Part shown: one piece after another, positions 17,932-50,349 of the stretch
Layout of the letters: every line of letters begins with the position of its first letter
Numbering within the stretch: position 1 is the first letter of the stretch
DNA from: Scyliorhinus canicula
Taxonomy: Eukaryota
Direction of reading: 5' to 3'
DNA: 64,000 bases
Assembly: GCF_902713615.1 (NCBI RefSeq)
Contig: NC_052148.1
Location: 228,431,336 to 228,495,335, forward strand
The notes under the pieces: model-generated
What the model saw: the letters and a program-made list of their open reading frames with translations, nothing else
What the model was told of the DNA's origin: nothing
The model's database searches: none
Translations under genes and position numbers: made by a program

Positions 17932-18049
17932 GAGGTTACAGCCTTCAAACTTGAAAATGCCCTGTTTATTTTTACTCTCTGCCTACTGCCATTAACAAAT
18001 CCTCCATCCATAATACATTATCTCACAACTCCATGAGCTCTTAACTTAT

Positions 18050-27800: not shown

Positions 27801-29199
27801 GTAAATTTTAATTATTATTATATTTTGCATTATGGCATATGATGAATAAATTCATGTGTGGTTAGCCCAGAAATATAGGATGAGTAGCGTCTTCGCCATA
27901 ATAATTAGACAGCATATCAGTGAACTTAGGTTAAGTGAGGATAATGATATGAGCATTTGCCGCAGATCATTACCATGGATTGAACTTTCAATGCTCATTT
28001 GTGATAGTTGTTAACTTACCCGACAATTCTTCCTTCTACATCTGAACAAGCATGCCAAAAGTACCCATCAATCCTAATGTTGAAGTATTTTTAGTTCTTA
28101 CAGCAAATATAGCTGTAGATTAAGCACTGACTATCTGTTTCTGTGTATTACAAAATGGACAACTTGCGCTTTTAATGAACTGAGCTGTTTTCATGATGTT
28201 GGTTGAGGGATGAATGGTAATCTGCAGATTGGGAGAATTCCCCTTGTTTTCATGAGAACTTTTATGTATGCTTGAGTGGGCAGGTCATTGCTCTGGTTCA
28301 ATGCCTTGTTCTGAAGAAAGTGACAGTGCTAGATTCTACAATCTTCTAAGTCATTCCAAAAGGCATGTTTTTAAAAAAAAGAATTTACTTGTTTTCTCCA
28401 TGAAGAAATTTAACAGTGAATGTTGCATTAGAGCCATGATATGTCAACGTTTACCATCGAAACTAGAGATAGTCCACTGTTGCACCTGAACAGTTTTGTC
28501 CCTGGTTTTCTCTCTCCTATGTTCAGTGTTTCCTAACAATAATTTTTGATGTTAAAACCTGCAATGTGAGGACACAGATTTCCCCAACGCATGCACAAAT
28601 TAGTAATTTCATCTATTAACTTTTATACTTCATAAGTCAGATTGTGTCTTTCAGAACCTTCTTATTACAGGCTTTCCAGCTTTCTATTTTTTCTTGACAG
28701 GAAGTGACCTGGCTCTGCTCGATACTTTAATGTGGACAGACCAGCTTCTAAAAGAATTTTCAATTTAAGAAATTGTTGAACATACATCTAACCTTTCTCG
28801 GTGGAGCAACGAGTTAGTATATTAATATGCCAATGCGTTAACTGCCAGGTTACGTCCACTGGATTATCAGCCACAAATAACAGCAAAATTGCTAGCTCAG
28901 GTTCTGCAATTAGCTGAATAGTCTATTCTTGTTTTAGGTCAATCTTTGATTAAAGTTTAAAGCTGGAAAAGATGCAGTTACCAATGAACTGTTGTAGTTA
29001 ATGATAAATTGCAGAATATGTCACAAGTGTTTGCGTTCAAATTAACTCATCTCTTTTGTAAACTAAAACGGGTCATGATACGTGCAGGATATGCATTTTT
29101 GCCTGTTTTAACTTTAACCAATAGCCTTGTCACTCTCCTGTAGTTGAATGTGATAAATATGTATTGTATTTGACTCAAAGCAAGCGAGGATTACAATGC

Positions 29200-30070
29200 A
29201 TTGGCTGAGGCTGTAAAGAGATATCAAAAGCTGTAAAAAGACATGGACAGGTTAAATGAGTGGGAAACAAGGTGGCAGATGGAGTATAATGTGAGAAGGT
29301 GTGAGGTTATCCACTTTGGTGATAAGAATAGAAAAGAAGATCTTTTTTTGAAAGTGAGAAACTTTGAGATGTTGATGTTCAGAGAGACTCGATGTACTTG
29401 TACATAAAAAACAAAAGTTAGCATGCGGGTACTGCAAGCAATTAGGAAAGGAAATAGCATGTTGGCCTTTATTGAAAGGTGATTGGCATGCAAGAATAAG
29501 AAACTTCTTACAGGACTTTGAAGAGACCACATGGAGTGCGGTGCACGGTTTTTGCTCTCCTTATCTCAAGAAGGATATACTTGCCTTGGAGGTAGTACAG
29601 TGAAGGTTCACTAGATTGGTCCCTAGGATGAGAGGGTTTCTAATGACGAGCGACTGAGTAAATTGAGCTTGTATTCTCTTGGGTTTAGAAGACTGAGAGG
29701 GGGATCTTGTTGACGCATAATTCTGAAGAGGCTTAACTGAGAGGATGTTTCCCTTGGCTGGGTAATGTAGAACACAGGAACGCCATTTCAGGAAAAGGGG
29801 TCAATCATCGTGGACTGAGATGAGGAGAAAATCTTTGACTCAGAGGTTTGTCAGTCTTAGGAATTCTCTACTCCAGACTGTTGTCAATGCTTCACCACTT
29901 CATTATTGAGTATATTCGAGGCTGGGATAAATAGATTTTCGAACTCTCAGGAATCCATGTGGTTTGGTGGTACATGGAAAAACGGAATTAAGGCAGAAGC
30001 TCACCCTCATTATGTCAAATGGCGGTGCAGCCTCGAGGGGCCACATGGTAGACTCAGCTCCAATTTTTAA
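29200..30070 (+). mobile_element. Old CR1 3' fragment in JCHAIN intron 1
   Basis: Decayed WQMEYNVRRCEVIHFG and LERLSKLSLYSL motifs. Confidence 0.85.
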
Positions 30071-30544
30071 GGTCTTATGTTTTTATAAGTGTGGCAGTAT
30101 GACTGATATTCTTTTTTACATCCCAAAACAGTATCAGCTCTGAGCTCACTCTGTACACAGATGCTAAATGGAACATTTTAGTTATAAAATATATAACTAT
30201 TATCGTGACAAGGCTATTCAAATTCAAAATTTATAACTTGCCACAATTAAAGTGATTGCAATAAAATGAAAGATTAGTACAAATGTGGCTAAATGAAGAC
30301 ATTTAAAAAAGGCTTTCAACAAAACATAAAAGTTTGTCAAGGATTATAAAATGACGGCATAATAATGAAAACAATTTCAAAAAACAGGAATATAAATAAA
30401 AACCTTTAATAAAATGCACAAAATTAAACAATAAAATTGTCATATCACATATAAACCGATTTTAAAAACTAAATTCTGCCTCTCAGCTTTAAAAAACATG
30501 CAGTTCAGTAAGTCCAAATCATAAGAAAGTATAAGAAAGTTCTA

Positions 30545-30635
30545 GAGTATTATTCGACTCGAAACGTTAACTCTTTCTCTCTCCACAGATGTTGCCAAAC
30601 CTGCTGAGCATTTCCAGCACTTTCTGTTTTTAGTT
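30545..30635. mobile_element. Short Penelope-like terminal fragment
   Basis: TCGAAACGTTAACTC...CACAGATGTTGCCAAACCTGCTGAG...CCAGCACTTTCTG. Decayed relative at 1040-1090. Confidence 0.45.
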
Positions 30636-30729
30636 TGCTTTAATAAAAAAGTATGCATGTTTCATGAAAATAAATTCAGGTCATGTTGTTCTTTTTTTAA
30701 GAAAAATTCTACATTGCTTTTTGAATGCT

Positions 30730-32430
30730 GTGCTCACTGGGGAACGGCTTCCCATTGACGCGTCCCTTGATGGGGCACTGAGTGCCATTGAACAAGGGAC
30801 CACTCTTGGAGCCCACAAGGAAGCCTACACAGGTTCGCTTTTCATGCTCTCCACATGCCTGGGTGGCATTGCCAAGCTGGCAGGAGCTGCCAAGATGCCA
30901 GGGTGGATGTGCATGGGTGCCAGGGTGGCCTGAAAGGAGGGTAGAGGGGGTATGAAGGGGGGGGGGGTGAAGGGTAAATAAGTAGGGGCCGCAGGGGGGT
31001 GGAGGGGGTGACCGCCACTGTCTTAATAACAGTAGCGGAAGGGTGCAGCCTGTAGTCAGCATTAATTGCCTTGAGGGCCTCCATTGGCAGAAGGGCACGA
31101 AGGCCGTCCATGGGACTTGCCACCACAGACTTAATTGAGGTGGAGGAGGGAAGGTAATGTCACCCTCCTGCCTGATTAAACACTCCCCCACATCACCAAA
31201 CCTGACACAGGGACAGGCATTAAATGCTTCCCTAGGTCAAAGGTAATGTTATAACATGGGTTGTTTTGGATTTAACAAATCGTGTTGTCAGGGATGGGAA
31301 CTGTTAGTTTTTCCATATCTAATCAATGACTTAGACGAGTTACAAAACAGGTTTACAGATGGCACTAAGTTAGAAGACACCGTAAATTACCAAAATGAGA
31401 ATAGGACATTAGAACAAGACATAGATCGACTAAATGACTGAGCAAAGCTGATGGAGCTCAATGTGGGGAAGTGTGATATCATCTACTTCAAATTGAAGGA
31501 AGACAAATCACAGCATTTTCCAGATGATGGGCAGAATTTAACAGAAACATTTTGAAGTTCATTTGTTTTGTAGAGTTTCCCGCTGGCTCTGCTGGCTAGT
31601 TCCCCACAACTATCCAACCACATTTGATTTTTTTGGGGGCCATGGGGAGTTTCTCACCGGTTTAGCCCACAATTAGAATTTTTTTCAGCGCTTGGGAGCT
31701 GAACTCAGAGATCAGACCGCCATTTTGAAACAGTGCCCCGATCTTTAAGTAGGCTTGTGGGTCCCCAGCAACCCACATCCATGGGCAATGACACTCCCCA
31801 CACACATGGACACTACCTCACACCCCTCCAAGCGAGGACACCCTGCTATGGGGTCCCTGGGGGTCTTCAGGCCCCCTCACACCCTCTGACAGGTCTCCCT
31901 CCTTCCTGAACCCCCACCTGTCACCCCCTCCACCCCCCTGCGGCCCCTACTTATTTACCCTTCACCCCCCCTTCATACCCCCTCTACCCTCCTTTCAGGC
32001 CACCCTGGCACCCATGCACATCCACCCTGGCATCTTGGCAGCTCCTGCCAGCTTGGCAATGCCACCCAGGCACCTTGGCAGTGCAAGATGCCAGCTGGGC
32101 AGTGCCAAGGTGCCTGTATTCCAGGGAGACGACCATGGGACCACCGTGCACTATCCCTGGGCACCCAGGGGCCGCCAATGGACCACATTTGTGCCCAGCT
32201 GCAGCCTCGCTGGGGTGGCTAGTAGATCCCGGGAGGCAGGGTAAGCTCATGTTAGTAGGTTTAAAACCTACATAAACCTACGGCCGAATGCTGTTTGTTC
32301 ACGCCCCTTTTGGGCGGGATTTTGATTCCAACGTCTCATGGGACTTGGGTATATCCCGCGAGGCGTAAAGGCTGCCGGGAGGCCCGCGGGAGGCCTCTGC
32401 CAGGATCTACCGCTCGCATTGTGTCCTCGT
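30730..32430. mobile_element. Two oppositely oriented Harbinger-type non-autonomous fragments in intron 1, sharing a near-perfect inverted segment
   Basis: 30856-31012 is the reverse complement of 31920-32072 except for G-tract length. Confidence 0.75.
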
Positions 32431-33083
32431 TGGAGCAAAACACAGCCTGTAGACCGCGTCCGACATTTGTATTTCCTCATACCAGGCAGTGTCTTCGTAA
32501 AATTACTCTATTCCACTTTCTGAAGCCTCAATATGCTTCCTATAATATGGAGCCCAATACTGCACATTAATCTAGCCGAGTCCTTCTGTTCAACATCACT
32601 GCAGTTTCCACTGTTGCGAAGGATACAATAATTGAATAATTAGTCGATTAGTTACAAGTTTATAATTTCAATCCCAATCTAGAATGTACCTTGGTGTATA
32701 TTTTGTTCACTCTGGGCACATGATAATGATGCAAATTCTGTGAAAGCAGATCCTGTCAATCTCTTGGCATTCACAAGTGGCACTTGGAGTCATCTAGAAT
32801 CTGGGTCAGCAGCTTTTCTTTTAAACTCTTTTGTTTGTGGCCCGATGCTGTCATTTCCAGTCCAATTTACTTCTGTTAACTAGCACTGGTCCTTGGTGAC
32901 TCACTTTGACAACAAGAGGTTCAGTGTGTGCATTTGATAAGAGCTCACACACAAAAACCATACCCATACCACTTAATTAATATCTAGCTGAAGTTACACC
33001 TGGGCTTCCAGTAAAGGAAGTATTAGTTCCTCATTTTAATGATAGTTGCTTCAGTGACTGAGTAACCATGTCTATCTTTACAG

Positions 33084-33204
33084 CTGACAGCCAACTTCTA
33101 GTTTCATCGAAATGTAAGCTTTTGGAGGTGAAAACCCGAATTGTTGTGACTGAATTACCTACTGGTGCAAGAGTGGAACATATCGCCAGAGATATAAAAA
33201 TCAC
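33084..33204 (+). CDS. JCHAIN: Immunoglobulin J chain, exon 2 (ADSQLLVSSKCKLLEVKTRIVVTELPTGARVEHIARDIKIT)
   Basis: Acceptor tctttacag and donor C|GTAAGT; 121 nt, phase 1 to 2. Aligns by eye with human LVDNKCKCARITSRII...IVERNIRIIV. Confidence 0.93.
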
Positions 33205-34334
33205 GTAAGTTGATGCATCGTTGATTCCCGATCATATTCACCATATGGTAAAATTAAATGGAAAGGAATATTGCTACAAACTGATGAGAGACAGTTCTGC
33301 ACTGTGAACACGAGAAAATAAATGGAAAGGCACATAACAGAGTGGAGACAATCATTTCATCATTCAGACTAAGGCAGGTAGAGCATAGTTCTCCTGTCGG
33401 GAATGCAGGAATTCTGTCACGCCAACCATCCCACCACCACTGTCCTACAAAACAATTTCATTCCCATGATGAGCATGTAGGCTAGCGAATCTGTCAAATT
33501 TCTCCTCCATTTCTACTTCGACATTTAAAAATATCAGAATTGTAAGGAATTCTATTACCGGGTCAAAAGATTCCGGTGGTAGGATAAGCAATGTGCACAG
33601 TTTTGGTGCTATTATTCCTGTAGGATGTTTCCAAAAGCAATGACAAACTGTTGCTGTAATGAACCAAAAATGGAAAACAGCAGCACGGCAATTTGGATTG
33701 CTGCACGTTGTTGAACTCACCTTGACTGGATGGACTTGTCCAGCTGGCTGGGTACGGTGCTGCATGAGATGTAGCGACAGGATGGAATACCAGACCATGG
33801 AAATCAAGCTGATTCCAGTTAATCACAAGATGAGGAAGCCATCTCTGCTTTATCCATCCCAAAAGCCCATTGTGGCACAGAATCATTTCTTAATTAATTC
33901 AAGAACTCTTTCCCCCAATATTCTCTTCAAAGTGCAATTTTACAATATTTGTTCTAATCAGTCATTGGATTACTCAGTCAATCGGTTTCAATTGCACAAT
34001 GTGTCATTAAGTTGGTTCGAAACTACCTTTATCAGTCAGATCAGAGAGAAAAACTAAAGCGGACTTGGGTTCGGTTTGAGTCATGCTACAAACATGACGA
34101 AGTTTAAAGTTACTTGAAAGGGGCAACCTTTTATTCTATTGATAATCCAGCTTGCCCTCAATTTCAGCATTGCTATTCAGCTATGTGTAAAGGACTTTAA
34201 ATGATTGATTTTATTTAACAGCATTATAAAATTTCACCTGTAATGAAACATATCCACACACAATATGATTTAGGGGCATATGTTGAGCATCCCTGGTAAT
34301 CTCGAGATGACTGTTAATTGCTCTTTCATTACAG

Positions 34335-34415
34335 AGTTCCAATGCGAACCAGAGTGAACATTTCAGATCCAACCTCCCCAATTCAGACCAAGTTTGTCTA
34401 CAAGATTTCAGATTT
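34335..34415 (+). CDS. JCHAIN: Immunoglobulin J chain, exon 3 (VPMRTRVNISDPTSPIQTKFVYKISD)
   Basis: Acceptor ctttcattacag and donor TT|GTATGA; 81 nt, phase 2 to 2. Near-diagnostic match to human VPLNNRENISDPTSPLRTRFVYHLSD, including the NIS glycosylation sequon. Confidence 0.97.
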
Positions 34416-35656
34416 GTATGATTGCTATTTTTTTTTATTACTTTCACGATGTATAATTTCAGTGTTCAAACCATCATTTCAATTCAGATTTTACAATGTG
34501 TCATGCATGTGGTGTACAAAGCAGAAACTAGTTACTTTAAATAATTTTGCCTCTTTCGAATGGATCAGATTATTCAGAAGCGACTGTATGATAGCTTTAG
34601 TGGGCCATTTTTGTGGAAGAAGAGGAGATGAAATGGAAGCAATCAAAATTAGAAATGCAAAGGATGGGGAAACATCTTTGTCTGGAAGGTGGATCAGTAA
34701 CCGAAAGGGAGGTGAATTGTGGTTGGAGCAGGTGCTGCCAACCATGCAGGAAATGACTCCAAGCTGAGAAACATTGAAGAATGACACAACATGGGGGGAG
34801 CATGGGCTCCAAGCTTTTTTGTGCGCTGCACTTTAAACCTTGGAGGATGTGACGAAAAGGAAGAAATATTGCTGTATCCACAGGATCCGGACACATACTC
34901 GGAAGGAGGTCTGAAAGGCAGTAGCAGTCAAGTAGTACTTGGTTCCCAGTATCCCTGTGATAGCGGATTGCCCCAGTGCCATGGGGGGGGTGGGGGTGCA
35001 TTTTTTAAAGCGCAAATCCGGGCACCCTTTAAAAAAGTGCCCCGATCTCTTGCCAGCTCTATCAGGCACTGCCCCACCACCGTGATGGCATGGACAACCC
35101 CTCCAACTGCAAGTCTGTTTTATCGCCAGCACTCTGTGCACAGAATGGAAAGTACCAGTCAATGAATGCATCTTCAAATGACATATCCTGCCAACTGCAC
35201 CACTAGCCTCAGACACGGTTCAATTTTCCACGCCCCCAAGACTAACCGACCAAAAATCTTTATCATTGAGGTCTCACACCTGGCATTCATATGCTCCACC
35301 TTACCCTCATACGCTTCACACTGCTGCCAGCCTCACACATGCATCTCACAGCTTGAGCACACTGCCAGCCATTCAACCATGGCAGAAACATCAACTAAAC
35401 AAATTGCACCACATTCACCGACCCACTTCCCTCTCTCTCTCTCCATAGCAGGACAAGTGGTGCAGAACTGGAGGCAACAGGAGCTAACTGGTTGGAAACA
35501 AGCCAATGGCAGAGTGCAAACCATTGAAGAAGAGTCTATCCTTATCAATAATCCTTCTCCTCAGATCCCCCCAACTCCTCATCCCACAATCTCTTCTGTT
35601 TTACAGGTTGCAGAAGCATGTACTTCTTGCTTTTCCCACATCATAACCTTAACTCT

Positions 35657-36005
35657 GGGCAGCACGGTAGCATTATGGATAGCACAATCGCTTCACAGCT
35701 CCAGGGTCCCAGGTTCGATTCCGGCTTGGGCCACTGTCTGTGTGGAGTCTGCACATCCTCCCCGTCTGTGCGTGGGTTTCCTCCGGGTGCTCCGGTTTCC
35801 TCCCACAGTTCAAAGATGTGCAGGTTAGGTGGATTGGCCATGATAAATTGCCCTTAATGTCCAAAATTGCCCTTAGTGTTGGGTGGGGTTACTGGGTTAT
35901 GGGGATAGGGTGGAGGTGTTAACCTTGGGTAGGGTGCTCTTTCCAGGAGCCGGTGCAGACTCGATGGGCCAAATGGCCTCCTTTGGCACTGTAAATTCTA
36001 TGATT
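35657..36005 (+). mobile_element. Young HE1-type SINE (intron 3)
   Basis: Same subfamily as 24296-24652. Confidence 0.93.
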
Positions 36006-36404
36006 ATCCTTCTGCCTTCCTCCTATCAAAGACCTATAAAGTGCAACCGAACCAGACAGTGGAGGATCAGCAAAACGACAATGACAATGAAGGCACATTG
36101 AGCTCACTTTCACACTCAGCCACCAGCTCAGACTCTGCTGTGTTTAAGGATAGCACAGAGGCAGTAGGAAGTCATGTGCTGCAGTGGATAGTGTCCCAGC
36201 CTCTGAACCAGAAGCTCTGGGTTCAAGTCACCCTATGGCCACGGAAGGAGCATTCTTAACGTGGCCAAACAGGTTAATTATCAACCTGCAAGCCCTTCCA
36301 AAGTGCCTACAGGGGGAGTCTCCTAGCCAGCCATGCTTGCTGCAGATTCCTTAGCTATAGCTTCTGGTGACAGGCTAGAGACCTGGACCAGGGTTCTCCG
36401 AGCC

Positions 36405-36920
36405 CGCAGTGGGTCAGAGAATCGCCGGGGTGGGCATGTAAATCCCGCCACGCCGCTCCGACACCGGGCCGCCGATTCTCCGGCGACCAGAGAATCGGCG
36501 GCAATCGTGCCAGCGCAGTCACCGCGGTGCCGGTCGGAGGCCGTTGAAAGCTGCAGCGATTCTGCGCGCTCGACGGGCCGATGCCCGCCAAGTCCCGTCG
36601 GCGTTGTTTGTGTATGGTCCTACCCGGCGGGACCTCGGCGTTCTGGCTGCGGGGGCCGTCCTGGTGGGGTAGGGGGGGCAAGTGGAACCAGCTCTGGGGA
36701 GGTTTCTCAGCTGCTCAGTTGGTAGCAAGGTCTGTCCCTTCCTGATGGTGAGGTAGTACAACACACACTGGCCAGAATTCTCCCACCATCGGGATTCTCT
36801 TTTCCCACCGGCAGCGCACCCTGCCCACGGGTTTCCCGGCCGTGTGGGGTGACTTCAATGGGAAATTCCATTGATAAGCTGCGGGGAGACAGAATCCCGC
36901 CACCAGCGAATGGTGCGCCG
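36405..36920. mobile_element. Harbinger-type MITE fragments immediately 5' of the 46-bp array
   Basis: GAGAATCGCC, GATTCTCC and CAGAATCCCGCC motifs shared with the MITE at 56558-57252. Confidence 0.7.
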
Positions 36921-39900
36921 CCCAGCAATACACTGCGCGGGAACCGGAGATTCCCGTCAAGCAGATCCCAGCAACACGCGGCGAGGGAACCGGAGATTCC
37001 CGTCCAGCAGATCCCAGCAACACGCGGCTAGGGAACCGGAGATTCCCATCCAGCAGATCCCAGCAACACGCGGCGAGGGAACCGGAGATTCCCGTCCAGC
37101 AGATCCCAGCAACACACGGCTAGGGAACCGGAGATTCCCGTCCAGCAGATCCCAGCAACACGCGGCTAGGGAACCGGAGATTCCCGTCCAGCAGATCCCA
37201 GCAACACACGGCTAGGGAACCGGAGATTCCCGTCCAGCAGATCCCAGCAACACGCGGCGAGGGAACCGGAGATTCCCGTCCAGCAGATCCCAGCAACACG
37301 CGGCTAGGGAACCGGAGATTCCCGTCCAGCAGATCCCAGCAACACGCGGCTAGGGAACCGGAGATTCCCGTCCAGCAGATCCCAGCAACACGCGGCGAGG
37401 GAACCGGAGATTCCCATCCAGCAGATCCCAGCAACACACTGCGAGGGAACCGGAGATTCCCGTCCAGCAGATCCCAGCAACACGCGGCTAGGGAACCACA
37501 GATTCCCGTCCAGCAGATCCCAGCAACACGCGGCGAGGGAACCGGAGATTCCCGTCCAGCAGATCCCAGCAACACACTGCGAGGGAACCGGAGATTCCCG
37601 TCCAGCAGATCCCAGCAACACGCGGCTAGGGAACCTGAGATTCCCGTCCAGCAGATCCCAGCAACACGCGGCTAGGGAACCGGAGATTCCCGTCCAGCAG
37701 ATCCCAGCAACACGCGGCTAGGGAACCTGAGATTCCCGTCCAGCAGATCCCAGCAACACGCGGCGAGGGAACCGGAGATTCCCATCCAGCAGATCCCAGC
37801 AACACGCGGCTAGAGAACCGGAGATTCCCGTCCAGCAGATCCCAGCAACACGCGGCTAGGGAACCGGAGATTCCCATCCAGCAGATCCCAGCAACACACT
37901 GCGAGGGAACCTGAGATTCCCGTCCAGCAGATCCCAGCAACACGCGGTGAGGGAACCGGAGATTCCCGTCCAGCAGATCCCAGCAACACGCGGCGAGGGG
38001 ACCGGAGATTCCCGTCCAGCAGATCCCAGCAACACGCGGCGAGGGAACCGGAGATTCCCATCCAGCAGATCCCAGCAACACGCGGCTAGGGAACCGGAGA
38101 TTCCCGTCCAGCAGATCCCAGCAACACACTGCGAGGGAACCGGAGATTCCCGTCCAGCAGATCCCAGCAACACACTGCGAGGGAACCGGAGATTCCCGTC
38201 CAGCAGATCCCAGCAACACGCGGCGAGGGAACCGGAGATTCCCGTCCAGCAGATCCCAGCAACACGCGGCTAGGGAACCTGAGATTCCCGTCCAGCAGAT
38301 CCCAGCAACACACGGCTAGGGAACCGGAGATTCCCGTCCAGCAGATCCCAGCAACACGCGGCTAGGGAACCGGAGATTCCCATCCAGCAGATCCCAGCAA
38401 CACACCGCTAGGGAACCGGAGATTCCCGTCCAGCAGATCCCAGCAACACGCGGCGAGGGAACCGGAGATTCCCGTCCAGCAGATCCCAGCAACACGCGGC
38501 GAGGGAACCGGAGATTCCCGTCCAGCAGATCCCAGCAACACACGGCTAGGGAACCGGAGATTCCCGTCCAGCAGATCCCAGCAACACGCGGCTAGGGAAC
38601 CGGAGATTCCCGTCCAGCAGATCCCAGCAACACGCGGCGAGGGAACCGGAGATTCCCGTCCAGCAGATCCCAGCAACACGCGGCGAGGGAACCGGAGATT
38701 CCCGTCCAGCAGATCCCAGCAACACACGGCTAGGGAACCGGAGATTCCCGTCCAGCAGATCCCAGCAACACGCGGCTAGGGAACCTGAGATTCCCGTCCA
38801 GCAGATCCCAGCAACACACTGCGAGGGAACCGGAGATTCACGTCCAGCAGATCCCAGCAACACGCGGCTAGGGAACCGGAGATTCCCGTCCAGCAGATCC
38901 CAGCAACACGCGGCTAGGGAACCGGAGATTCCCATCCAGCAGATCCCAGCAACACACTGCGAGGGAACCTGAGATTCCCGTCCAGCAGATCCCAGCAACA
39001 CGCGGCGAGGGAACCGGAGATTCCCGTCCAGCAGATCCCAGCAACACGCGGCGAGGGGACCGGAGATTCCCGTCCAGCAGATCCCAGCAACACGCGGCGA
39101 GGGAACCGGAGATTCCCATCCAGCAGATCCCAGCAACACACTGCGAGGGAACCGGAGATTCCCGTCCAGCAGATCCCAGCAACACACTGCGAGGGAACCG
39201 GAGATTCCCGTCCAGCAGATCCCAGCAACACACGGCTAGAGAACCGGAGATTCCCGTCCAGCAGATCCCAGCAACACGCGGCGAGGGAACCGGAGATTCC
39301 CGTCCAGCAGATCCCAGCAACACGCGGCGAGGGAACCGGAGATTCCCGTCCAGCAGATCCCAGCAACACACTGCGAGGGAACCGGAGATTACTGTCCGGC
39401 AGATCCCAGCAACACGCGGCTAGGGAACCGGAGATTCCCGTCCAGCAGATCCCAGCAACACGCGGCTAGGGAACCGGAGATTCCCGTCCAGCAGATCCCA
39501 GCAACACACTGCGAGGGAACCGGAGATTCCCGTCCAGCAGATCCCAGCAACACGCGGCGAGGGAACCGGAGATTCCCGTCCAGCAGATCCCAGCAACACA
39601 CGGCTAGGGAACCGGAGATTCCCGTCCAGCAGATCCCAGCAACACGCGGCTAGGGAACCGGAGATTCCCATCCAGCAGATCCCAGCAACACACCGCTAGG
39701 GAACCGGAGATTCCCGTCCAGCAGATCCCAGCAACACGCGGCGAGGGAACCGGAGATTCCCGTCCAGCAGATCCCAGCAACACGCGGCGAGGGAACCGGA
39801 GATTCCCGTCCAGCAGATCCCAGCAACACACGGCTAGGGAACCGGAGATTCCCGTCCAGCAGATCCCAGCAACACACGGCTAGGGAACCGGAGATTCTCG

Positions 39901-40048
39901 TCCAGCAGATCCCAGCAACACGCGGCTAGGGAACCGGAGATTCCCGTCCAGCAGATCCCAGCAACACGCGGCTAGGGAACCGGAGATTCCCGTCCAGCAG
40001 ATCCCAGCAACACGCGGCGAGGGAACCGGAGATTCCCGTCCAGCAGAT
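36921..40048. repeat. 46-bp minisatellite, 68 units, in JCHAIN intron 3
   Basis: Consensus CCCAGCAACACGCGGCGAGGGAACCGGAGATTCCCGTCCAGCAGAT. The span is 3128 bp, exactly 68 x 46, so there is no net indel. Confidence 0.97.
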
Positions 40049-40409
40049 CACCAGGAATCCTGACATCTACTTCGCTCAGCCGTCCAAGCATTCTTTTAAC
40101 ATCCCAATGTTCTGCTCTGTCATTCTGTGTGGCATTATGGCTTTCCGTGTCCCAGAAGGAGTTATGAACAAGGAAATGGAAATGAGGGAGGAACTCGGGA
40201 ACATTACAGCCACCAGAGAAGTGGTACTGAGCAAATTGTTGGAACTGGGGGAGTTGTTACACACCACAGTGATCAGCCAGATGGTAATTGGATCACCCTT
40301 GGTCATCCTTTGGTTTCTCATGGCAACTCGAGCGCAACTGGTACAGTGAGCTGCCATGGAGTGAAGGAATCACAAACTGCACCACGCCTCATCTCCTCCA
40401 ATCTTCAAT

Positions 40410-40742
40410 AGGGCAGCACGATAGCACAGTAGTTAGAACTGTTGCTTCACAGCTCCAGGGTCCCAGGTTCGATTCCCGGCTTGGACCACTGTCTGTGCGG
40501 AGTCTGTGTGTTTTCCCCGTGTGTGCGTGGGTTTCCTCCGGGTGCTCCGATTTCCTCCCACAGTCCAAAGATGTGCGGGTTAGGTAGATTGGCCATGCTA
40601 AATTTCCCCTTAGTGTCCAAAAAGGTTAGGCGGGGTTATGGGGTAGGGTGGAGGTGTGGGCTTAAGTAGGGTGCTCTTTCTAAGGGCTGGTGCAGATTCG
40701 ATGGGCCGAAGGGCCTCCTTCTGGACTGTAAATTCTATGGTG
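40410..40742 (+). mobile_element. HE1-type SINE
   Basis: Full head, core and tail. Confidence 0.9.
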
Positions 40743-40759
40743 TGAAAATCGCATGGACT

Positions 40760-41245
40760 TCTCTGTCAGTAAGATTGAGACTACCGTTACCATATCCCAC
40801 CCTTCCACTGATCCATCAGACTAAATTTCCTCTAAAGGTTCCCCCCTACCCAAGACTTGAACTCACATCTTTCTCAAGTTTCTATCCACTGTCCCCCCTC
40901 ATGCCCTCTCCAAGCTCGTCTTGTCCATTAGATTTACCTCCTGTCCTGTTCCTATTCTCACTAAACTGCTAACCACTGAACTTTGTCTCTTCATCCTCAT
41001 ATTAGCTGATATTACTAACTCTCTTCAGGTACTGTTGCCTCATCACCGCACACGCCAATAAAAGCCGACCCCTTTACTCCTCCACCATTCCAAACTACCG
41101 CCCTATCTCTCGTTCCTCTCCAAAGCCCCTGAACATGTTGCCATCTCCCAAATCCATTCCCATCTTTCCTGGAACTGCATGTTGAATCCCTCCAACCAGG
41201 TTTCCAGCCCTGTCACATCAATGGTGCTGACCAAAGTCACAAATG
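40760..41245 (+). mobile_element. L2 LINE RT fragment
   Basis: NYRPIS-like region; related to 63400-64000. Confidence 0.7.
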
Positions 41246-41247
41246 AG

Positions 41248-41545
41248 GACGGCACGGTGGCACAGTGGTTAGCACTGTTGCCTCACACTCCATTCCGAAC
41301 TCAGGTCACTGTCTGTGCCGATTTTGGACTTTCTCCCCGTGTCTGCGTGGGTTTCCTCCGGGTACTCCGGTTTCTTCTCATCGTCCAAAGATGTGCAGGT
41401 TAGGTGGATTGGCCATGCTAAATTGGCCCTAGGTGGAATAACAGGGATGGTGTGGATATTGGGCCTAGGTAGGGTGCTCTTTCAGAGGGTTGGTGCAGGC
41501 TCGATGGGCCGAATGGCCTCCTGCACTGTAGGGATTCTATGACAT
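41248..41545 (+). mobile_element. HE1-type SINE (older)
   Basis: Head, core and tail are recognisable, with an internal deletion. Confidence 0.85.
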
Positions 41546-41989
41546 CCTATGTGACTGCGATAAAGGCAAACATTGATTCATAAATTCATAGACCTTTACA
41601 GCATAGAAGGAGGCCATTCAGCCCATCATGTTTTTGACACGGTTGACTACACCATCCTCCTCAAATGCCTCTCCACTGTGAGGCAGCTGGGTGGAACTCT
41701 GAAGGGATGAGGTATTGACCGGGGCCAGCCAAGCGATGAAGCTTAAAGGGTATCAGATATGTGAGTGAATGCTGGCCACCGGAGAAGGTGAAGAAATGAC
41801 AGACTCCAGGGCCAGGAGCAAACGTTGTGCCAGGAAGGCCTGAAGGCAACTGGTGAGAACACCAGCCTGACTGTCTCTCTCTTTCTCTCTCTCTCACACA
41901 TCCCTCGCAGAATTCCAAGAGATTTTAGTATGGAGCCAGTGGAGCTGTCAATTCTACTCATCACAGACTCCAGCAACTAAGAGAGGCCA

Positions 41990-42800
41990 CAGCCAGGGAA
42001 AACCCAGCACCAGGAGGCCAGGGCAAGCTCAAGGGTCAGCCACGGTTCAAGGCAGATATGGGCTTGAAGTTGAAGAAGAAGGAGGGTTTTCATGGAGCTG
42101 TCGGACATGTGCCGCAGGAGACTCCGCCACACAAGGGGGACTGTGCAACACATGTGCCATCTTTTTTCAAACCTGGCATCTGATGGAGGAGGAGGAGGAC
42201 ACCAGTTTTCTGTGACTGTGAAAGTCATGGTCGCCCTCAGCTATTACACCACTGGATCATTCTAGGATTCAACGGGAATCTTTGTGGCATCTCACAGACA
42301 TCATCCCACAAATAAATCCGTGACGTGATGGATGCACTCTATGTCATGGCCTCGGTCTGCATTAATCTTGACCAGGCCCATCAGGATGAGAGGGCTGTGG
42401 TTTCTGTTACCATCGTTGGTATGCACTGGTGCAAAGGGGCCATTGATGGCATTCATGTGACACTACACACCCCCGTGGCATCAGGGAATCCCATACATTA
42501 AAAGAAAGGGGTTCCACTCCCTTAACATGCAGCTGGTGTGTGACCACCAGATGAAGATCATGTACATGTGAGCACATTTTCCAGGGAGCATGCATGATAG
42601 CTCCCTCTTTGTGCAGTCTCAAATCCCTGGAATATTCAAGGGTCATCCCAAGCTGCAGGGATGCCTAATTGTGGACGAGCAATACCCGCTGTGGCCTTGG
42701 CTGATGATGTCTGTGCGGAGGACTGAGACCGGAGCACAGTCCCATTACAACAAGGCTCACAGTGCCATCTGGTCTGTGACTGTGCAGTCTGCTGAAGATG
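41990..42800 (+). pseudogene. Harbinger DDE nuclease (HARBI1-like) pseudogene
   Basis: Motifs DMCRRRLR, LCGISQTSSH, GAIDGIHV, KGFHSLNMQLVCDHQ, FPGSMHDS and YPLWPWLM, with stops and frameshifts. Confidence 0.88.
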
Positions 42801-43479
42801 TGCTTCCACTGCCTTGAGTAGTCCAGTCGGGCCCTTCAATACAGTCCACCGAGAGTCTCCCACACATTTGTGGTACGCTGTGTCCACCATAACGTAGCGC
42901 AACAGTGGGGCAACATTCTCAATGAAGAAGACCAGACCAGGAACGTTTCCTCTAATGAGAAGGACGTCTAGGTGGGGGTGAAAGAAGAGGTCAAAGATCA
43001 GCCGGAGGTTGGAGGCCAGGCAAGGGACAAGGGTTCGCGTGGTCAGGTGCACCAGGGATGCCCTCATCACGTTCCAGTTTGCACAATAACACCATCATGT
43101 TGTCCATCAGCTCTACGACCCCCCCAACACCCCCAAGACCTTTAGGACCCCCTTCAGGACTGAGGGTGGAGGTCCATTACAAAACTATCTCATGGGGGTG
43201 CTGGGCCTGGTGCATGCTTAGCAGGAGGGTGATGACCACTCGCAGTGAGGAAAGTTCTGATACTCCTCAGCTTTTGGGTATGGCTGACTCCAGTCTGTCT
43301 GCTGCGAGCAGACTGACTCTCCGACTTATTGCCACTGAGAGTCGGGGCCACATCCCTTTGGCCTGCTGCTCTAGAGGAGGTTAGGGGGTTATGGTTCACT
43401 GCTTAATGGCAGAGTCCTTCCAGAATCTAATTGATTTTCTGTTTGAGTGGCATAACCTTTAACCTTACATTGAGGGAAA

Positions 43480-43935
43480 GTGGGAAAAGCTGTGTCCAGA
43501 TGGAGTGAGGACCTGTTCAAGTGGGGAGAGGCTCAAAGAGGGTGAGGCCTTCAGGTTGTGAATAAGGGAGGCTGAGGGGCAACCTGATAGAAGTTCATAA
43601 AATTATGAAGGGTATAGTTAGGGTGAACAGTTGGAGGTTTTTTCCCAGTGCGAAAATGACAATTACAAGGGGTCACAAGTTCAAGGTGAGGGGGTAAAGG
43701 TTCAGTTCAGTGGGGATGTGCGGGGTAAGTTTTTTTACACAGAGGGTGGTGGTGGCCTGGAATGCACTGCCAAGTGACGTGGTTGAGGCAGATACATTAG
43801 CGACCTTTAAGACTTACCTGGATAGGCACATGAACAGACGGGATATAGAAGGATACAGACGGTTAGTCTAGATAAGATACGTGATTGGTGGGGCTTGGAG
43901 GGCCGAAGGGCCTGTTCCTGTGCTGCACTGTTCTT
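43480..43935 (+). mobile_element. CR1 3' fragment inserted in the Harbinger element
   Basis: TRGHKFKVRG region and tail GGGCCGAAGGGCCTGTTCCTGTGCTG. Confidence 0.88.
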
Positions 43936-43939
43936 TCTT

Positions 43940-45620
43940 CATTGTACCTCTGGGTGTATTCCCAGGCTGCACATCAGAAGTGGAGGCGGCCTGCTCCTTT
44001 TCATACCTGTTGCCTGAAATGTTCTTGGTGGCTGTCCTGTGGAGGGCCTGGAGCTGGAGGGACCCAGCCCACTTTCGGGTGACACTGATGTTTCCGCGTC
44101 ACCCTGTTCTGCCTGCTTCCCCCCGAGAAGCACAGGTATCAGGAAAGGGGGGGGGGGGGGATCAGAAGGCATGGTCACTCCCTGGGTCTCTTGGGCGGAA
44201 GGTCCAGCACATCCTCCTCCCTCTGGGTGCTCGCGGGCCACTAGGTAACTCTACTGGATGGAGGGGCAGCTGGAGTGAGCTCCAGAGCCTCAACGCCAGT
44301 CCTGGAGGCCCCCAGTGTCTGAACAATACGATTGAAGCCCTCAACCAAGGTCCTCGGGAACTGGGGCACGCATTGCCCCAGGCTTTCCACTGCAGATGCC
44401 ACCCTTGCCATGTTGACCTGGGTGCCAAGCATTGCCGGCAACATTCCTATGACTGAAAGCTTTGGGACTCCTCCATTCCTCCTTGTAGTTGGAGGAATGT
44501 CGCTGACAAACCCTTCCTGGTATTCCTGGCTCTGTCTTTGCATCTATAACAGCTGAGGGATGAACGTGTCCACAGCACAGCACCTGGCTGGGGCTCGGCT
44601 GAGTCCTGGGATCCAGCAGACCTCCGACTGCCTGATCTCTGGGACGTTCCTGTCTCCAGCTGATCTGCATCAGAGGCTGTGTGGTGCTCACCAGAAAGTG
44701 ACCCAGAAGCCTGTCTGCTACGTTCTCCCACCAAGGTGTGTGTCTGCACTGGTGAATGGTGAAGGTGATAGCTGTGACATATCATCCACCTCCTCCTCAG
44801 ACATCTCCAAGATGCTGTCAAGGGTAGAAGGGGGCACTGTTATTGACAACAGCGGCTCATTGGTTGATGTTCCTGCAAGGCAGGGGACATAGTTTTAATA
44901 CATGGCCTTGTCAAAGTTTTGGACAACAAATACCTCACTTGAGACTGGTCAATGAATGAGGGTGCAATGGCTCCTCACCTTCCTGTCACAGGCCAACCTT
45001 GTTCTCTGTGCACGCCCACTCCTAGTTCTGCACTGTGAGTTCCATGGCCCTCTCTTCAAAAGGGGTTATGATCCTTAGTTTGGGCATTTCACCGCCTGTC
45101 AACTCTCTCCCTCTCTCTCTCTGGTTGTGGATAATCTCCTCCTGCGGGAACAGAAAAGGGGATAATGTGAGCAGAATGCCTGGCGGATCAGAGGTCGTGA
45201 ATAACTAGCATATGTGGGCACTGTGCTTAAGTAAGGGAGGGCTCTTATGAGAAGTGCCAGGTGGTTTGAGGATGATACTGGGAGATCGGGTGCTGAGGAC
45301 CTGCAAGGTGGTATCACGTGGGTTCAAGGGGACATTTTGGGGATGATGGAAGGATTGAATGCCACAGACAGACAGGGAGCACTTACCCTTACAGATCGCA
45401 GTAGGTCATTCATTTTTTTCCTACGTTAAATCCTTTTCCTCTTGGTCATACCACTGGCACTAACCAGTGCTGCCACTGTCTCCCAGGTGGGATTGGTGCC
45501 CTTGCTGGAGGGCCTCATGCCAACACGCGGGAAGATTGTGAACCGCCTCTCCTCCCCAGCATCCAGCAATCGAGTCAGAACCTCTTCCAAGAACCTGGGA
45601 GCTGGTCTTCTATCTGCCAT
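43940..45620 (-). pseudogene. Harbinger Myb/SANT-like DNA-binding protein pseudogene with spliceosomal introns
   Basis: MADRRPAPRFLEEVLTRLLD...WETVAALVSA...(stop)RRKKMNDLLRSVR, then donor GTAAGT at 45386-45381. Acceptor near 45145; second donor GTGAGG near 44980. Confidence 0.85.
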
Positions 45621-45744
45621 CCTCCTCGGTTAAATGGGAGTGAGTGCTGTGGAGTCGGTTAAATACAGCGCCCCCTTGATTAAATTGCTCAGATGACCCC
45701 CACGCCGAGGAGGGCGAATCAGACACTTCACGCCTCATGTGAAA

Positions 45745-45930
45745 AAAAATTAAAATGAAAATCGTTTATTGTCACAAGTAGGCTTCAAATGAAGTTACTG
45801 TGAAAAGCCCCTAGTCGCCACATTCCGGCGCCTGTTTGGGGAGGCTGGTACGGGAATTGAACCGTGCTGCTGGCCTGCCTTGGCCTGCTTTCACAGCCAG
45901 CGATTTAGCCCTGTGTGCTAAACCAGCCCC
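45745..45930 (-). mobile_element. tRNA-derived SINE (GGGGCTGGTTTAGCAC family)
   Basis: Near-identical to 7508-7709. Confidence 0.88.
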
Positions 45931-46520
45931 TGGAGGGTGGAGGAACGTAATCTCACAAACTGCCTAAAGGTGGCGCTCTGGACCACCCCACTGGTGCTGG
46001 TGGAATTCGCCCCCTGTTTTCAGTGCCAAAAATGACACTTTGGCATATTTCGGAAATTTACGGCCATTAACTTTGTCGTTCAGAATTTCACCAGAGTCAG
46101 AAGTGCTGTGAATAGGATTTTCAGCCACGCTTATCCCAGCGTTGACCCATATCCTCTATTAGCTGAAGAGCTACATTTCGTGAGAATATCTTGGTAGATT
46201 CTCTGGAACCACTTTCCTACCAGCACTGTGATTGACTGTCTTTAGGATGTTAGTATTAATCCCCCACCTCTTAGCTTGTACCATTAGTTTGACTGCATCA
46301 CAGATTGTCCTCTTGAATTCACTGTGAATGGATATTAGTTACATGCAAAAGAGTTCCTTGTCAATTTGAACATGCTAAATGAGTTGAAAAAATTTATTCT
46401 AAAGTCATTCAACTGCATGTTAGATAAAGCTGTTTGTTGAACATCTAATGACTTTCAGATATCAGTGTTATGTATTCAATGGTAATTATATCTTTGATAA
46501 TCTTTGACATCTTTCTACAG

Positions 46521-46722
46521 CTGCAAGAATTGCACCCCAAAGTCATCTCCACTCGTACCTCAGTGCAACCCCAAACCTCCACCCATTGATGAATGTTACG
46601 CCCATGAAAACAAAACATGCGGGCACACCCAAAGACGTGAAGTTAGTTTATGGCATCAAACCCCTACAGTGGCACCTGTTGAAACGACAGTAGATTTGTC
46701 ATCGATATCAGATGCTCCATAG
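46521..46722 (+). CDS. JCHAIN: Immunoglobulin J chain, exon 4 (CKNCTPKSSPLVPQCNPKPPPIDECYAHENKTCGHTQRREVSLWHQTPTVAPVETTVDLSSISDAP*)
   Basis: Acceptor ctttctacag; TT|C gives Phe, then CKNC (human LCKKC). CY-x6-C spacing matches human CYTYDRNKC, and a VET motif lies near the C-terminus. TAG at 46720-46722. Total CDS is 471 nt, or 156 aa. Confidence 0.92.
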
Positions 46723-46820
46723 ATTGTTCTAAAGATTATACAGATAATTGCCCCTGTTTCTTTACGGCATTTTAGCTTTGTCTTTTAGCCATACTGGCCT
46801 TTTACCTTCTTGGAACAGAT

Positions 46821-46853
46821 AATAAAATTCTTTGCTGCTTGCTTCATAATAAA
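46821..46853 (+). terminator. Candidate JCHAIN polyadenylation signals (two AATAAA)
   Basis: AATAAA at 46821-46826 and 46848-46853, 100-130 nt after the stop codon, followed by GT/T-rich sequence. Confidence 0.65.
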
Positions 46854-46989
46854 CACTGCTCTCCATATTATGCATCATTTGTAAATGTGTCATGTTTTGC
46901 GGCAAAATTGAGACAATGGGAAAACACGGCATGCTGGCACTCAATACCCATTTTCTAAAAGTGAACACTGGAACAGTTGAAATATTTAA

Positions 46990-47042
46990 GAGTAAGAAGT
47001 CTCACACCAGGTTAAAGTCCAACTGGTTTATTTGAAATCACA
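46990..47042. mobile_element. Truncated Penelope-like terminal repeat fragment just 3' of JCHAIN
   Basis: AGTAAGAAGTCTCACACCAGGTTAAAGTCCAAC matches 57475-57510; the hammerhead part is absent. Confidence 0.55.
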
Positions 47043-48735
47043 AGGGGATCCACCGGCCCTGTCGACCCTCACTGTGGCAGAGCAGAGGGCCCTGGACGTG
47101 GTCGGTGGCCTGGAGGAAAGGGAGGCCGCAGGTGTAGAGTTCAGCCACGGGCGAGGAAGTGAGATCCTGTGGAGCTGTAGTGCCCCATGCCATGTGTGTC
47201 AACCCCAACCCCAACATCACCCTTGCCCTTTCCCCACACCACCCCATCCCACCCTCACCTTCAGCATTACCCTCACCCCCACACCACCCTCACCCCATAC
47301 CACCTTCAGCCTCACCCCCACCCCATACCACCCTCACCCCGACCCCCACACCACCCTCACCCCCACCATCCCCCCACCCTGCGGTCTAGTCATGCATCGT
47401 GTCTTGTGTCTGCTGGTGATGGGGCGGGTCCATCCGTTGTTCCCCCGTCCCCAGCCAGTGCCACAGCTGGAGCACCCCCACCCCACCGTGAGCGAAGCAC
47501 TGACGAGGAGAGCAGCTCCGTCAGCAGCCCTCGACCCGAGACTCAGAGACACCTCGGTTGGGCATTTTAGTGGAGGCTCCTGGGACACCACCTGGTGCTC
47601 ACCACCCAGCTCCACATCAGGTGGAGGTAGGAACGGCCAAGGGGGCGGACTGTCAGAGGGCAGGCCGAATCCAGGGACTAGCAGCCGTCCAGATGGCTTT
47701 TGGGCTTCTGGAACGGACAGTCCCATCGACTGCGGAGATGCAGTCGCAGAGCCAAGGACTGCATGAGGGGTTGTCAGTGAGCAGCCAGTACCCGCCAACG
47801 CAGGTTCAGGAGTCCAATCACATGCAGGGGCAGGAGATGGTGCCAACCATGGGAGCCACCCAGGACAACATAGCACAGGTGGCAAGGATTTTGGCTATGG
47901 ATCGGCATTACCAAGGCCTGGGGCATTCAGTGCAGGCGCTGGTCAAGGCCCAAGATGCGGTGTCCGTGCCCCTGGCCAGTTTCCCTGTGAACCTGGAGAC
48001 AATCAGAGCGTCACGTGCACGTTGGCCCTCCAGCATACACGTCGTGGGGCCTCACGGGCATACCTGAGCCCCATGTCCTGCCCTCCCTCATCCTCCTTGT
48101 CGGATGAGGCCTGCCGTTCATCCTCCTCCTCCTCCAGCACGTCGCCCCTCTGCCGTGATGTTGTGGAGGACACAGCAGGCCACCACGATGCAGGCGACCC
48201 TCTCAGCATCACACTGGAGGATCCCTCCAGAGTGGTCCAAGCACCTGAACCACATCTTCAGGACCCCGAAGCACCGCTCGATCATGCCCCTGGTTGCTGC
48301 ATGGGCGTCATTCTGGCGGGCATGTTGGCAATGGCGGCGAACCTCGATGCCCATGCAGCATCCTGGTGGGCTCGGTCCACCGTGAAATGGAGGTACCGAG
48401 CTGACTGGACATATAGGGTCTCCATGACGGAGCGGATACAACTGTGAGACCCCGGACAGGTTGCCAATCGGTGCCTGGACGTGCCCCGTCGCGTAAAACC
48501 CACCGGAACCAAGTGCTCTCCCCCAGACACCCGCTATGCCAAGTGTGCCATGATCTGGCTGATATGTCGCACTGTCTCCCTGCTCAGCCGGAGTCTTCAT
48601 CGTCATGCCCGGTCCAGCAGGCGCTGCCGGCACACACGAGGCCTCATGCGGCACTCCTTTGCACCTCCTCCTCTTCGGCCTGTTGGGTGGCCAGCTCTCC
48701 TTCCTGGGTGGCTGCCTTCTGTTGCTCTGGGGCTC

Positions 48736-50349
48736 GCTCTACTGCTCCACGCTCCGCTGCTCCACGCTCCGCTGCTGCACGCTCCGCTGCTGCATGCTCC
48801 GCTGCTGCATGCTCCGCTGCTGCATGCTCCGCTGCTGCATGCTCCGCTGCTGCATGCTCCGCTGCTGCATGCTCCGCTGCTCCACGCTCCGCTGCTGCAT
48901 GCTCCGCCGCTGCACTCTCCACTGCTGCCCTATCCGCTGCTGCATGCTCCACTGCTGCACACTCCACTGCTGCCCTATCCGCTGCTGCCCTATCCGCTGC
49001 TGCATGCTCCACTGCTGCACTCTCCACTGCTGCCCTATCCGCTGCTGCCCACTCCGCTGCTGCCCACTCCGCTGCTGCCCACTCCGCTGCTGCCCTATCC
49101 GCTGCTGCCCACTCCGCTGCTGCCCTATCCGCTGCTGCATGCTCCACTGCTGCCCTATCCGCTGCTGCCCACTCCGCTGCTGCACTCTCCACTGCTGCCC
49201 ACTCCACTGCTGCCCTATCCGCTGCTGCCCACTCCGCTGCTGCCCTATCCGCTGCTGCCCACTCCGCTGCTGCCCTATCCGCTGCTGCCCTATCCGCTGC
49301 TGCCCACTCCGCTGCTGCCCTATCCGCTGCTGCATGCTCCACTGCTGCCCTATCCGCTGCTGCCCACTCCGCTGCTGCACTCTCCACTGCTGCCCTATCC
49401 GCTGCTGCCCTATCCGCTGCTGCCCACTCCGCTGCTGCATGCTCCACTGCTGCCCTATCCGCTGCTGCCCACTCCGCTGCTGCACTCTCCACTGCTGCGC
49501 TATCCGCTGCTGCATGCTCCACTGCTGCATGCTCCACTGCTGCACACTCCGCTGCTGCACACTCCGCTGCTGCATGCTCCACTGCTGCATGCTCCACTGC
49601 TGCATGCTCCACTGCTGCCCACTCCGCTGCTGCACTCTCCACTGCTGCACAGTCCGCTGCTGCCCACTCCGCTGCTGCACTCTCCGCTGCTGCCCACTCC
49701 GCTGCTGCAGCTTCACTGCTGCCCTATCCGCTGCTGCCCACTCCGCTGCTGCTCACTCAGCTGCTGCCCTATCCGCTGCTGCATGCTCCACTGCTGCCCA
49801 CTCAGCTGCTGCACTCTCCGCTGCTGCCCTATCCGCTGCTGCCCACTCAGCTGCTGCCCTATCCGCTGCTGCATGCTCCACTGCTGCACACTCCGCTGCT
49901 GCAGCTTCACTGCTGCCCTATCCGCTGCTGCACACTCTGCTGCTGCACTCTCCGCTGCTGCCCACTCCGCTGCTGCAGCTTCACTGCTGCCCTATCCGCT
50001 GCTGGATGCTCCACTGCTGCACTCTCCACTGCTGCACACTCCACTGCTGCCCACTCCCCTGCTGCACTCTCCACTGCTGCATGCTCCACTGCTGAACGCT
50101 CTGGTGCTGCACACTCCGCTGCTTCCCGCTCCGCTGCTCACTCTCCACTACTGCACTCTCCACTGCTGCCCGCTTCACTGCTGCACTCTCCGCTGCTTCC
50201 CGCTCCGCTGCTCACTCTCCGCTGCTGCCCTATCCGCTGCTGCATGCTCAACTGCTGCACGTTCCGCTGCTGCATGTTCCGCTGCTGCCCACTCCGCTGC
50301 TGCACAGTCCACTGCTGCCCACTCAGCTCCTGCACTCTCTGCTGCTGCA
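48736..50349 (-). repeat. 15-bp tandem repeat (about 105 units) encoding AAAEH/AAAEW/AAADR/AAVES on the - strand
   Basis: Units such as CCGCTGCTGCATGCT, CCGCTGCTGCCCTAT and CCGCTGCTGCCCACT. Occasional 11-14 nt units (for example GCTTCACTGCT near 49710) shift the frame. Confidence 0.95.

Follow-up and report, generated by a model that had tools for sequence, protein, structure and literature searches.

The locus considered here raises the question of how a joining (J) chain that has lost two of the eight cysteines known from its mammalian counterparts, one of them a link to the immunoglobulin and the other an internal bonding partner, may still be tied into immunoglobulin M (IgM). The analyzed window, i.e. 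the whole 64-kb stretch of Scyliorhinus canicula DNA given above, contains the JCHAIN gene of this catshark, a single and expressed gene of four exons. The locus itself is ordinary: a RefSeq-annotated orthologue with the expected lineage pattern, equal to the nurse shark J chain. Newly assembled was the comparative picture, in which the sequences point to an eight-cysteine ancestor, a double loss of non-partner cysteines apparently confined to the Galeomorphii and a progressive decay of hairpin 3; it was not found stated in the literature searched, of which the supplementary datasets of PMC10801876 were no part.

The six-cysteine set of the catshark J chain

The mature catshark J chain possesses six cysteines (in the motifs SKC, CKNC with two, PQC, ECY and KTC; see Table 1), while the C-terminus ends with ...SSISDAP and without cysteine. 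These features and the KCKL motif had been described in an earlier, sequence-only reading of the stretch and were confirmed by the codons and by the identical RefSeq protein. The assignment to human positions was obtained in two steps: The N-terminal half was placed by a HMMER alignment to the human J chain in PDB, according to which the cysteine of SKC corresponds to C13, a leucine occupies the position of C15, and CKNC comprises C69 and C72. The C-terminal half was too divergent for pairwise alignment and was placed by a MAFFT alignment of 31 sequences, in which the rays, sawfish, cow shark and sawshark served as bridge; apart from one sawshark substitution, these bridging sequences contain eight cysteines in the tetrapod order. 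In this alignment, the C-x7-C spacing of C101 and C109 is common to mammals, rays and catshark, and the end of the elasmobranch hairpin 3 (...L-N-P-E-C) coincides with the tetrapod ...L-T-P-(D/E)-S-C; therefore, PQC represents C92, ECY C101 and KTC C109. The C134 position is gone together with most of the C-terminal hairpin 3. As judged from both alignments, the catshark J chain is truly without C15 and C134, and the six homologies (C13, C69, C72, C92, C101 and C109) as well as the two losses that had been proposed from the letters of the stretch were upheld.

In the human J chain, C13-C101, C72-C92 and C109-C134 are bonded within the chain, whereas C15 and C69 are bonded to tailpiece cysteines of the immunoglobulin (PMC8657937, PMC11729874), which agrees with the disulfide map underlying the sequence-only reading. 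Projected on this map, the catshark set leaves C109 without its partner and C69 as the sole remaining tailpiece link, with an even total of cysteines. Of the eight-cysteine set, both the motif C13-x-C15 and the pair C109-C134 are thus incomplete in the six-cysteine catshark chain. The accepted nurse shark member deviates likewise, and by this comparison the eight-cysteine set defines the tetrapod type and not the J chain family.

Distribution of the six-cysteine set among cartilaginous fishes

A phmmer search with the exon 4 product among 1.84 billion representative sequences yielded one true homologue, a basking shark protein; the other six matches were proline-rich, low-complexity proteins and were rejected as homologues. 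Starting from the basking shark protein and proceeding with a profile, 14 elasmobranch and approximately 90 tetrapod and lungfish J chains were collected, to which a cluster look-up added the nurse shark protein deduced from cDNA (AAO14897.1) and others. C-K-L at the C13/C15 positions, a retained C109 and the lack of C134 were common to all 12 galeomorph sequences; these represent 11 species of the Lamniformes, Orectolobiformes and Carcharhiniformes (basking, white, whale, zebra, nurse and epaulette sharks, two bamboo sharks, smooth-hound and two catsharks). Scyliorhinus canicula displays every trait of this type, namely C-K-L, six cysteines, a hairpin 3 devoid of cysteine, the S(I/F)SDAP end and a non-acidic isoelectric point (pI). 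According to this comparison, its pattern is the normal galeomorph (nurse-shark-type) state and not a peculiarity of the catshark. The alignment of chondrichthyan J chains that had been suggested as a check thus revealed a real pattern shared by 11 galeomorph species; the accompanying suspicion that the retention of C109 might be lineage-specific in comparison with the nurse shark had to be abandoned, as AAO14897.1 and all 11 species contain the same six cysteines.

The nurse shark J chain was reportedly cloned in 2003, and three of the eight cysteines were reportedly given as absent (Hohman 2003). Elsewhere, "only 2 conserved" cysteines are ascribed to it (PMC3743840). These divergent counts look like alignment artefacts that arise without bridging sequences.

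All eight cysteines were found in seven sequences of rays, sawfish, electric ray and cow shark. In the seven skate sequences, the chain terminates shortly after C101, with the result that C109 and C134 are lost together; the lungfish J chain is without C72 and C92, which were also lost together (as seen in the alignment, see also PMC3743840). Based on these skate and lungfish cases, cysteines of the J chain seem normally to be lost as bonded pairs, and the galeomorphs alone have, by the same alignment, lost two that were not partners. The galeomorph J chains formed one clade (support values of 100/99) that is subdivided in agreement with the accepted orders. The change of cysteine type required one step on the tree, which is consistent with orthology and with a single origin on the galeomorph stem. 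The data fit a succession in which an eight-cysteine ancestor would have exchanged C15 for leucine and lost C134, with hairpin 3 eroding thereafter. Database searches retrieved no J chains of chimaera, coelacanth, bullhead shark or dogfish; the node of the loss is therefore only bracketed, between the Galeomorphii on the one side and the Hexanchiformes, Pristiophoriformes and Batoidea on the other.

Two further observations were made in the sequence set. The J chain of Pristiophorus japonicus reads F-L-K-N-C in place of F-C-K-N-C; with C69 substituted by leucine, it contains seven cysteines and is without the canonical C69 link; either the sequence or its annotation is faulty, or the sawshark offers a second experiment of nature on the linking cysteine. 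In the skates Amblyraja (three sequences) and Rhinoraja (two sequences), two or three near-identical JCHAIN copies are located on one chromosome; the skate products of 122 aa extend only four residues beyond C101 and therefore possess neither hairpin 3 nor any of the SDAP tail.

Conserved docking residues and decay of hairpin 3

In a comparison of 61 J chains with the catshark as reference, F61, Y63, N49, D52 and P53 were invariant and I40 nearly so, and the same holds true for C69-x2-C72 (invariant or nearly invariant). I40, F61 and Y63 are the hydrophobic residues by which the mouse J chain docks onto the tailpieces (PMC11729874). None of the 12 galeomorph sequences deviates at C109, and the 13-26 residues that follow it vary in sequence and length: This segment comprises 31 residues in the eight-cysteine species and 19-26 in galeomorphs other than the two catsharks, in which 13 are left. 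Its shortening suggests that hairpin 3 has decayed progressively and to the most extreme degree in Scyliorhinus.

Beyond the position of C134, a C-terminal tail of the type ...xPTxxPvETTxDxxSxSDAP (46660-46719) was noted. In the 31-sequence alignment, its conservation extends over both cysteine types of sharks and rays, and it is absent from tetrapods; no function of this tail was found described in the literature searched. The mature catshark chain has a pI of 8.58, consistent with the neutral or basic character of cartilaginous-fish J chains (PMC10801876).

A possible local re-pairing of the disulfides

The gene structure, expression, cysteine homology and phylogenetic distribution presented here were observed or computed; from these, we infer every disulfide assignment for the catshark J chain. 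The protein most likely still closes the IgM pentamer in the canonical manner, its conserved strands bearing I40, F61 and Y63 being docked into the tailpiece β-sandwich of the nascent IgM. C109 probably has a new partner, because it is invariant beside a decaying segment and because the long retention of an unpaired thiol in a secreted protein is unlikely. As the two lost cysteines, C15 and C134, were not partners, it is proposed with moderate confidence that C13, C101, C109 and one tailpiece cysteine have been re-paired locally, which would leave no free thiol and keep two covalent tailpiece links, C69 and one from the C13/C101/C109 cluster.

How the four might be re-paired can be stated only tentatively. 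In the isomer preferred here, itself no better than a cautious choice among several, C13 is bonded to a tailpiece and C101-C109 closes a nine-residue loop. C13 would take over the link from the lost C15; C101, thereby freed from C13, and C109, freed by the loss of C134 and situated eight residues away, would pair with each other. The resulting chain would be fully paired (C13-tailpiece, C69-tailpiece, C72-C92 and C101-C109). In the mouse, pentamers are still secreted with the C15S J chain, whereas a chain with both exchanges (C13S-C15S) fails to be incorporated (PMC11729874); C13 can therefore substitute for C15. The mouse J chain requires at least one cysteine of the CxC motif and at least one of the CxxC motif, and its hairpin 3 with the C110-C135 bond is dispensable for pentamers (PMC11729874). 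A C13 tailpiece link combined with a C101-C109 pair is thus a plausible and strong alternative that was missing from the list of the sequence-only reading.

In the isomer put forward by that reading, C13-C101 is kept and C109 is bonded to the tailpiece; we consider it possible but doubtful. The same reserve applies to the broader proposition that galeomorphs close IgM pentamers by a distinct covalent topology in which C109 replaces C15 as the second μ tailpiece link, a proposition that is rather to be doubted than believed. If true, the attachment of a module approximately 450 million years old would have moved from strand β-1 to the base of what was once the receptor-binding hairpin.

Several points weigh against a local re-pairing with two links. 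An AlphaFold2 monomer of the mature catshark chain, based on the 61-sequence alignment, reached a mean predicted local distance difference test score (pLDDT) of 58.4 and a predicted template modeling score (pTM) of 0.44; only strands at residues 4-9, 14-24 and 30-40 were modeled, and residues 96-117 had a pLDDT below 50. This model is too poor for conclusions on cysteine geometry or for a fold search, as would fit the reported intrinsic disorder of the free J chain (PMC11729874). A structure of shark IgM with J chain was not found in PDB or in the searched literature, and the losses of C15 and C134 on one branch are a single event that offers no replicated correlation. The seven cysteines of Pristiophorus would, if real, mean that J chains may tolerate an odd number. 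Finally, the mouse C15S-C69S mutant is still covalently bound to IgM (PMC11729874); two defined links may therefore not be needed.

The last point leads to the reading that comes next in strength, a J chain with a single link or with loose linkage: The bond to the tailpiece would be formed by C69 alone or by C69 and C72 as a shuffling pair, C109 would be capped, buried or paired with C69, and the chain would be held mainly by the non-covalent β-sandwich. The incorporation of mouse C15S and C15S-C69S chains into pentamers (PMC11729874) and the conserved docking residues speak for such an arrangement, which is nevertheless judged unlikely: a secreted subunit with an unpaired thiol is normally retained in the endoplasmic reticulum, C109 has remained invariant over 11 species despite its decaying surroundings, and an even total of six cysteines is compatible with two external links or none, but not with one. 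Still less probable is a bond of C109 to some other partner, be it a second J chain, a shark-specific μ cysteine or the tails of IgNAR or IgW multimers. Multimeric IgNAR is indeed present in catshark serum and J chain is made by some of the cells that express IgW (PMC4279169); however, no direct support for such a bond was found in the analysis, and the same six-cysteine J chain occurs in the nurse shark, for which pentameric IgM has been documented as the partner.

Gene structure, expression and soundness of the gene model

The coding sequence spans 27734-46722 and is interrupted by three introns with GT/AG borders and phases 1-2-2, as determined from the sequence (see Table 1); the NCBI JCHAIN gene likewise spans 18,989 bp (GCA_902713615.2), and the nearest other called gene is more than 10 kb away. 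Four exons with phases 1-2-2 are the arrangement of every JCHAIN gene (PMC10801876), and the end of the signal peptide coincides with the exon 1/2 junction in the catshark gene, as expected from the same study. Residues 1-22 of the RefSeq protein were identical to the exon 1 translation in a tblastn search. Spliced, the coding sequence comprises 471 nt for 156 aa, and the mature chain agrees to 100% with the NCBI protein "immunoglobulin J chain-like [Scyliorhinus canicula]". The interval 33084-46722 given in the sequence-only reading correctly covers exons 2-4; the residue before CKNC required correction to phenylalanine, its codon being split TT/C across the exon 3/4 junction with the exon 3 donor after 34415.

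Table 1. Position of the JCHAIN exons and of selected codons in the window.
Feature	Position	Strand	Remarks
Exon 1, coding part	27734-27800	+	signal peptide, 22 codons + 1 base; donor G/gtaaat, phase 1
Exon 2	33084-33204	+	start of mature chain; SKCKL motif
Cys codon of SKC (C13 equivalent)	33113-33115	+	exon 2
Leu codon CTT at human C15 position (KCKL)	33119-33121	+	exon 2
Exon 3	34335-34415	+	N-glycosylation block VNISDPTSP and FVY docking motif; donor TT/gtatga, phase 2
Exon 4, coding part	46521-46722	+	CKNC (C69, C72), PQC (C92), ECY (C101), KTC (C109), 13-residue remnant in place of hairpin 3, tail ...SSISDAP
Cys codons of CKNC (C69, C72)	46522-46524, 46531-46533	+	exon 4
Cys codon of PQC (C92)	46564-46566	+	exon 4
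Cys codon of ECY (C101)	46594-46596	+	exon 4
Cys codon TGC of KTC ("orphan" C109 equivalent)	46618-46620	+	residue 101 of catshark mature chain
Stop codon TAG	46720-46722	+	exon 4
3' untranslated region	46723-46872	+	AATAAA at 46821-46826 and 46848-46853; poly(A) after ~46870-46872

The exon 3 product matched the Pfam family PF15097 (Ig_J_chain) with 35.8 bits (cut-off 27; E 8.8e-09), which is carried also by the full protein; the latter further matched eight J chain sequences in PDB from solved IgM/IgA complexes (E 1e-13 to 1e-16). The products of exons 2 and 4, too divergent or short, had no Pfam match on their own, and a chemokine family did not appear among the Pfam matches of the exon products.

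RNA contigs from four runs, which belong to four studies, were mapped on 44500-49499. In all four studies, contigs begin to match exactly at 46521, and the unmatched part that precedes is identical to the last 30 bases of exon 3; in one contig of 377 nt, 81 leading bases are unmatched, precisely as many as exon 3 comprises. In run X2, two contigs end in A-runs after 46870 and 46872, approximately 18 bases 3' of AATAAA, and no splicing out of exon 4 was seen among the contigs of the four runs. The summed contig depth of exon 4 was 1,000-19,000 in two runs. For exon 2 with the KCKL codons, 8 of 8 sampled 31-mers were found in 20 runs of 8 studies. Using eight-cysteine J chains as tblastn queries, neither a second JCHAIN copy nor an exon with the NPEC motif was detected in the 64-kb window, and database searches retrieved no further J chain of S. 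canicula. An alternative terminal exon, a further splice form or an assembly error, which had been named beforehand as what would overturn the cysteine pattern, did thus not emerge from contigs, 31-mers or tblastn. Although exons could be missed in the 12-kb intron 3 with its 3.1-kb tandem array, the notion that the cysteines are missing only through a faulty assembly or a wrongly placed splice site, or are supplied by an isoform or paralogue that escaped notice, can practically be dismissed, because the direct exon 3/4 junction and the poly(A) ends of the RNA contigs, the recurrent exon 2 words and the tblastn result speak against it, as do the identical RefSeq protein, the single S. canicula J chain in the databases and the ten other galeomorph species with the same cysteine pattern and ...SDAP end.

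Some additional features of the 3' part of the gene were recorded. In two runs, contigs of 5-13x depth over 45971-46550 cross the exon 4 acceptor unspliced, which fits carry-over of pre-mRNA or DNA; they differ from the window at three positions, all intronic (A>G at 46035, G>A at 46103 and a 1-base deletion at 46327). In intron 3, a 46-bp unit is repeated in tandem 68.1 times at 36921-40054 (95% matching), within a region whose G+C exceeds 60%. Further downstream in the same intron, at 45750-45930, the summed depth of RNA contigs rises to 80,000-350,000 in all four runs, where loose ends are numerous and hundreds of contigs match at 95-99%. Such a picture is typical of an interspersed element that is transcribed and present in very many copies, and not of a part of JCHAIN.

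Implications for the covalent closure of IgM

According to recent work in the mouse, the C13-x-C15 couple is pivotal in starting the covalent insertion of the J chain. The alignments indicate a whole superorder of sharks without C15 and without the partner of C109, of which the nurse shark at least still makes pentameric IgM containing J chain. Together with the eight-cysteine rays and the truncated skates, the galeomorphs represent a natural mutant series from which it may be learned which disulfides are really needed, and the superorder-wide rewiring poses a clean, testable question on the covalent closure of IgM pentamers. The comparison moreover corrects the inconsistent cysteine counts published for the nurse shark, and it provides a caveat for the argument that the J chain originated from chemokines: the CXC motif is ancestral, yet the sharks that most often serve as models do not possess it.

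Comparison with known J chains and chemokines

The closest known system is the J chain of the nurse shark, Ginglymostoma cirratum (AAO14897.1), which has been reported in pentameric IgM. It is approximately 64% identical to the catshark protein and shares with it the same six cysteines, the C-K-L motif, the C-x7-C spacing, the lack of C134 and the ...SDAP tail; both chains are neutral to basic (pI of 7.6 versus 8.6). They differ in the remnant between C109 and the xPT motif, which comprises 22 residues in the nurse shark and 13 in the catshark.

The eight-cysteine orthologues of Heptranchias, Pristis, Mobula, Hypanus, Hemitrygon and Narcine are 52-62% identical to the catshark J chain and possess the same tail and the same core encoded by exons 2 and 3; in contrast to the catshark, K-C-K-C is preserved in these chains, and their hairpin 3 is complete and closed by the cysteine of NPEC, which represents the ancestral state. 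The skate J chains (Amblyraja, Leucoraja, Rhinoraja and Raja eglanteria; 122 aa) also have six cysteines, but a different set: C15 is kept, whereas the bonded C109-C134 is lost by truncation after C101, so that no orphan cysteine is left.

With the human and mouse J chains (PDB 6KXS, 8BPE, 6UE7), the catshark gene has the four exons in phases 1-2-2, PF15097 and the NISDPTSP block in common, and the positions of I40, F61, Y63, C69-x2-C72, C13, C92, C101 and C109 are equivalent. In the catshark, however, C15 is substituted by leucine, C134 and the pIgR-binding hairpin 3 are absent, hairpin 2 is approximately eight residues shorter, an extra conserved tail ending with SDAP is present, and the pI is 8.6 as compared with approximately 4.6 in the mammals.

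The catshark gene was also considered as a CXCL chemokine; it was rejected as such given C-K-L in place of CXC, the lack of a chemokine Pfam match and a different disulfide set. The CXCL chemokines, which have been proposed as ancestors of JCHAIN (PMC10801876), likewise exhibit four exons, phases 1-2-2 and a basic pI, and in these genes, as in the catshark JCHAIN, the boundary between signal peptide and mature protein falls on the exon 1/2 junction.

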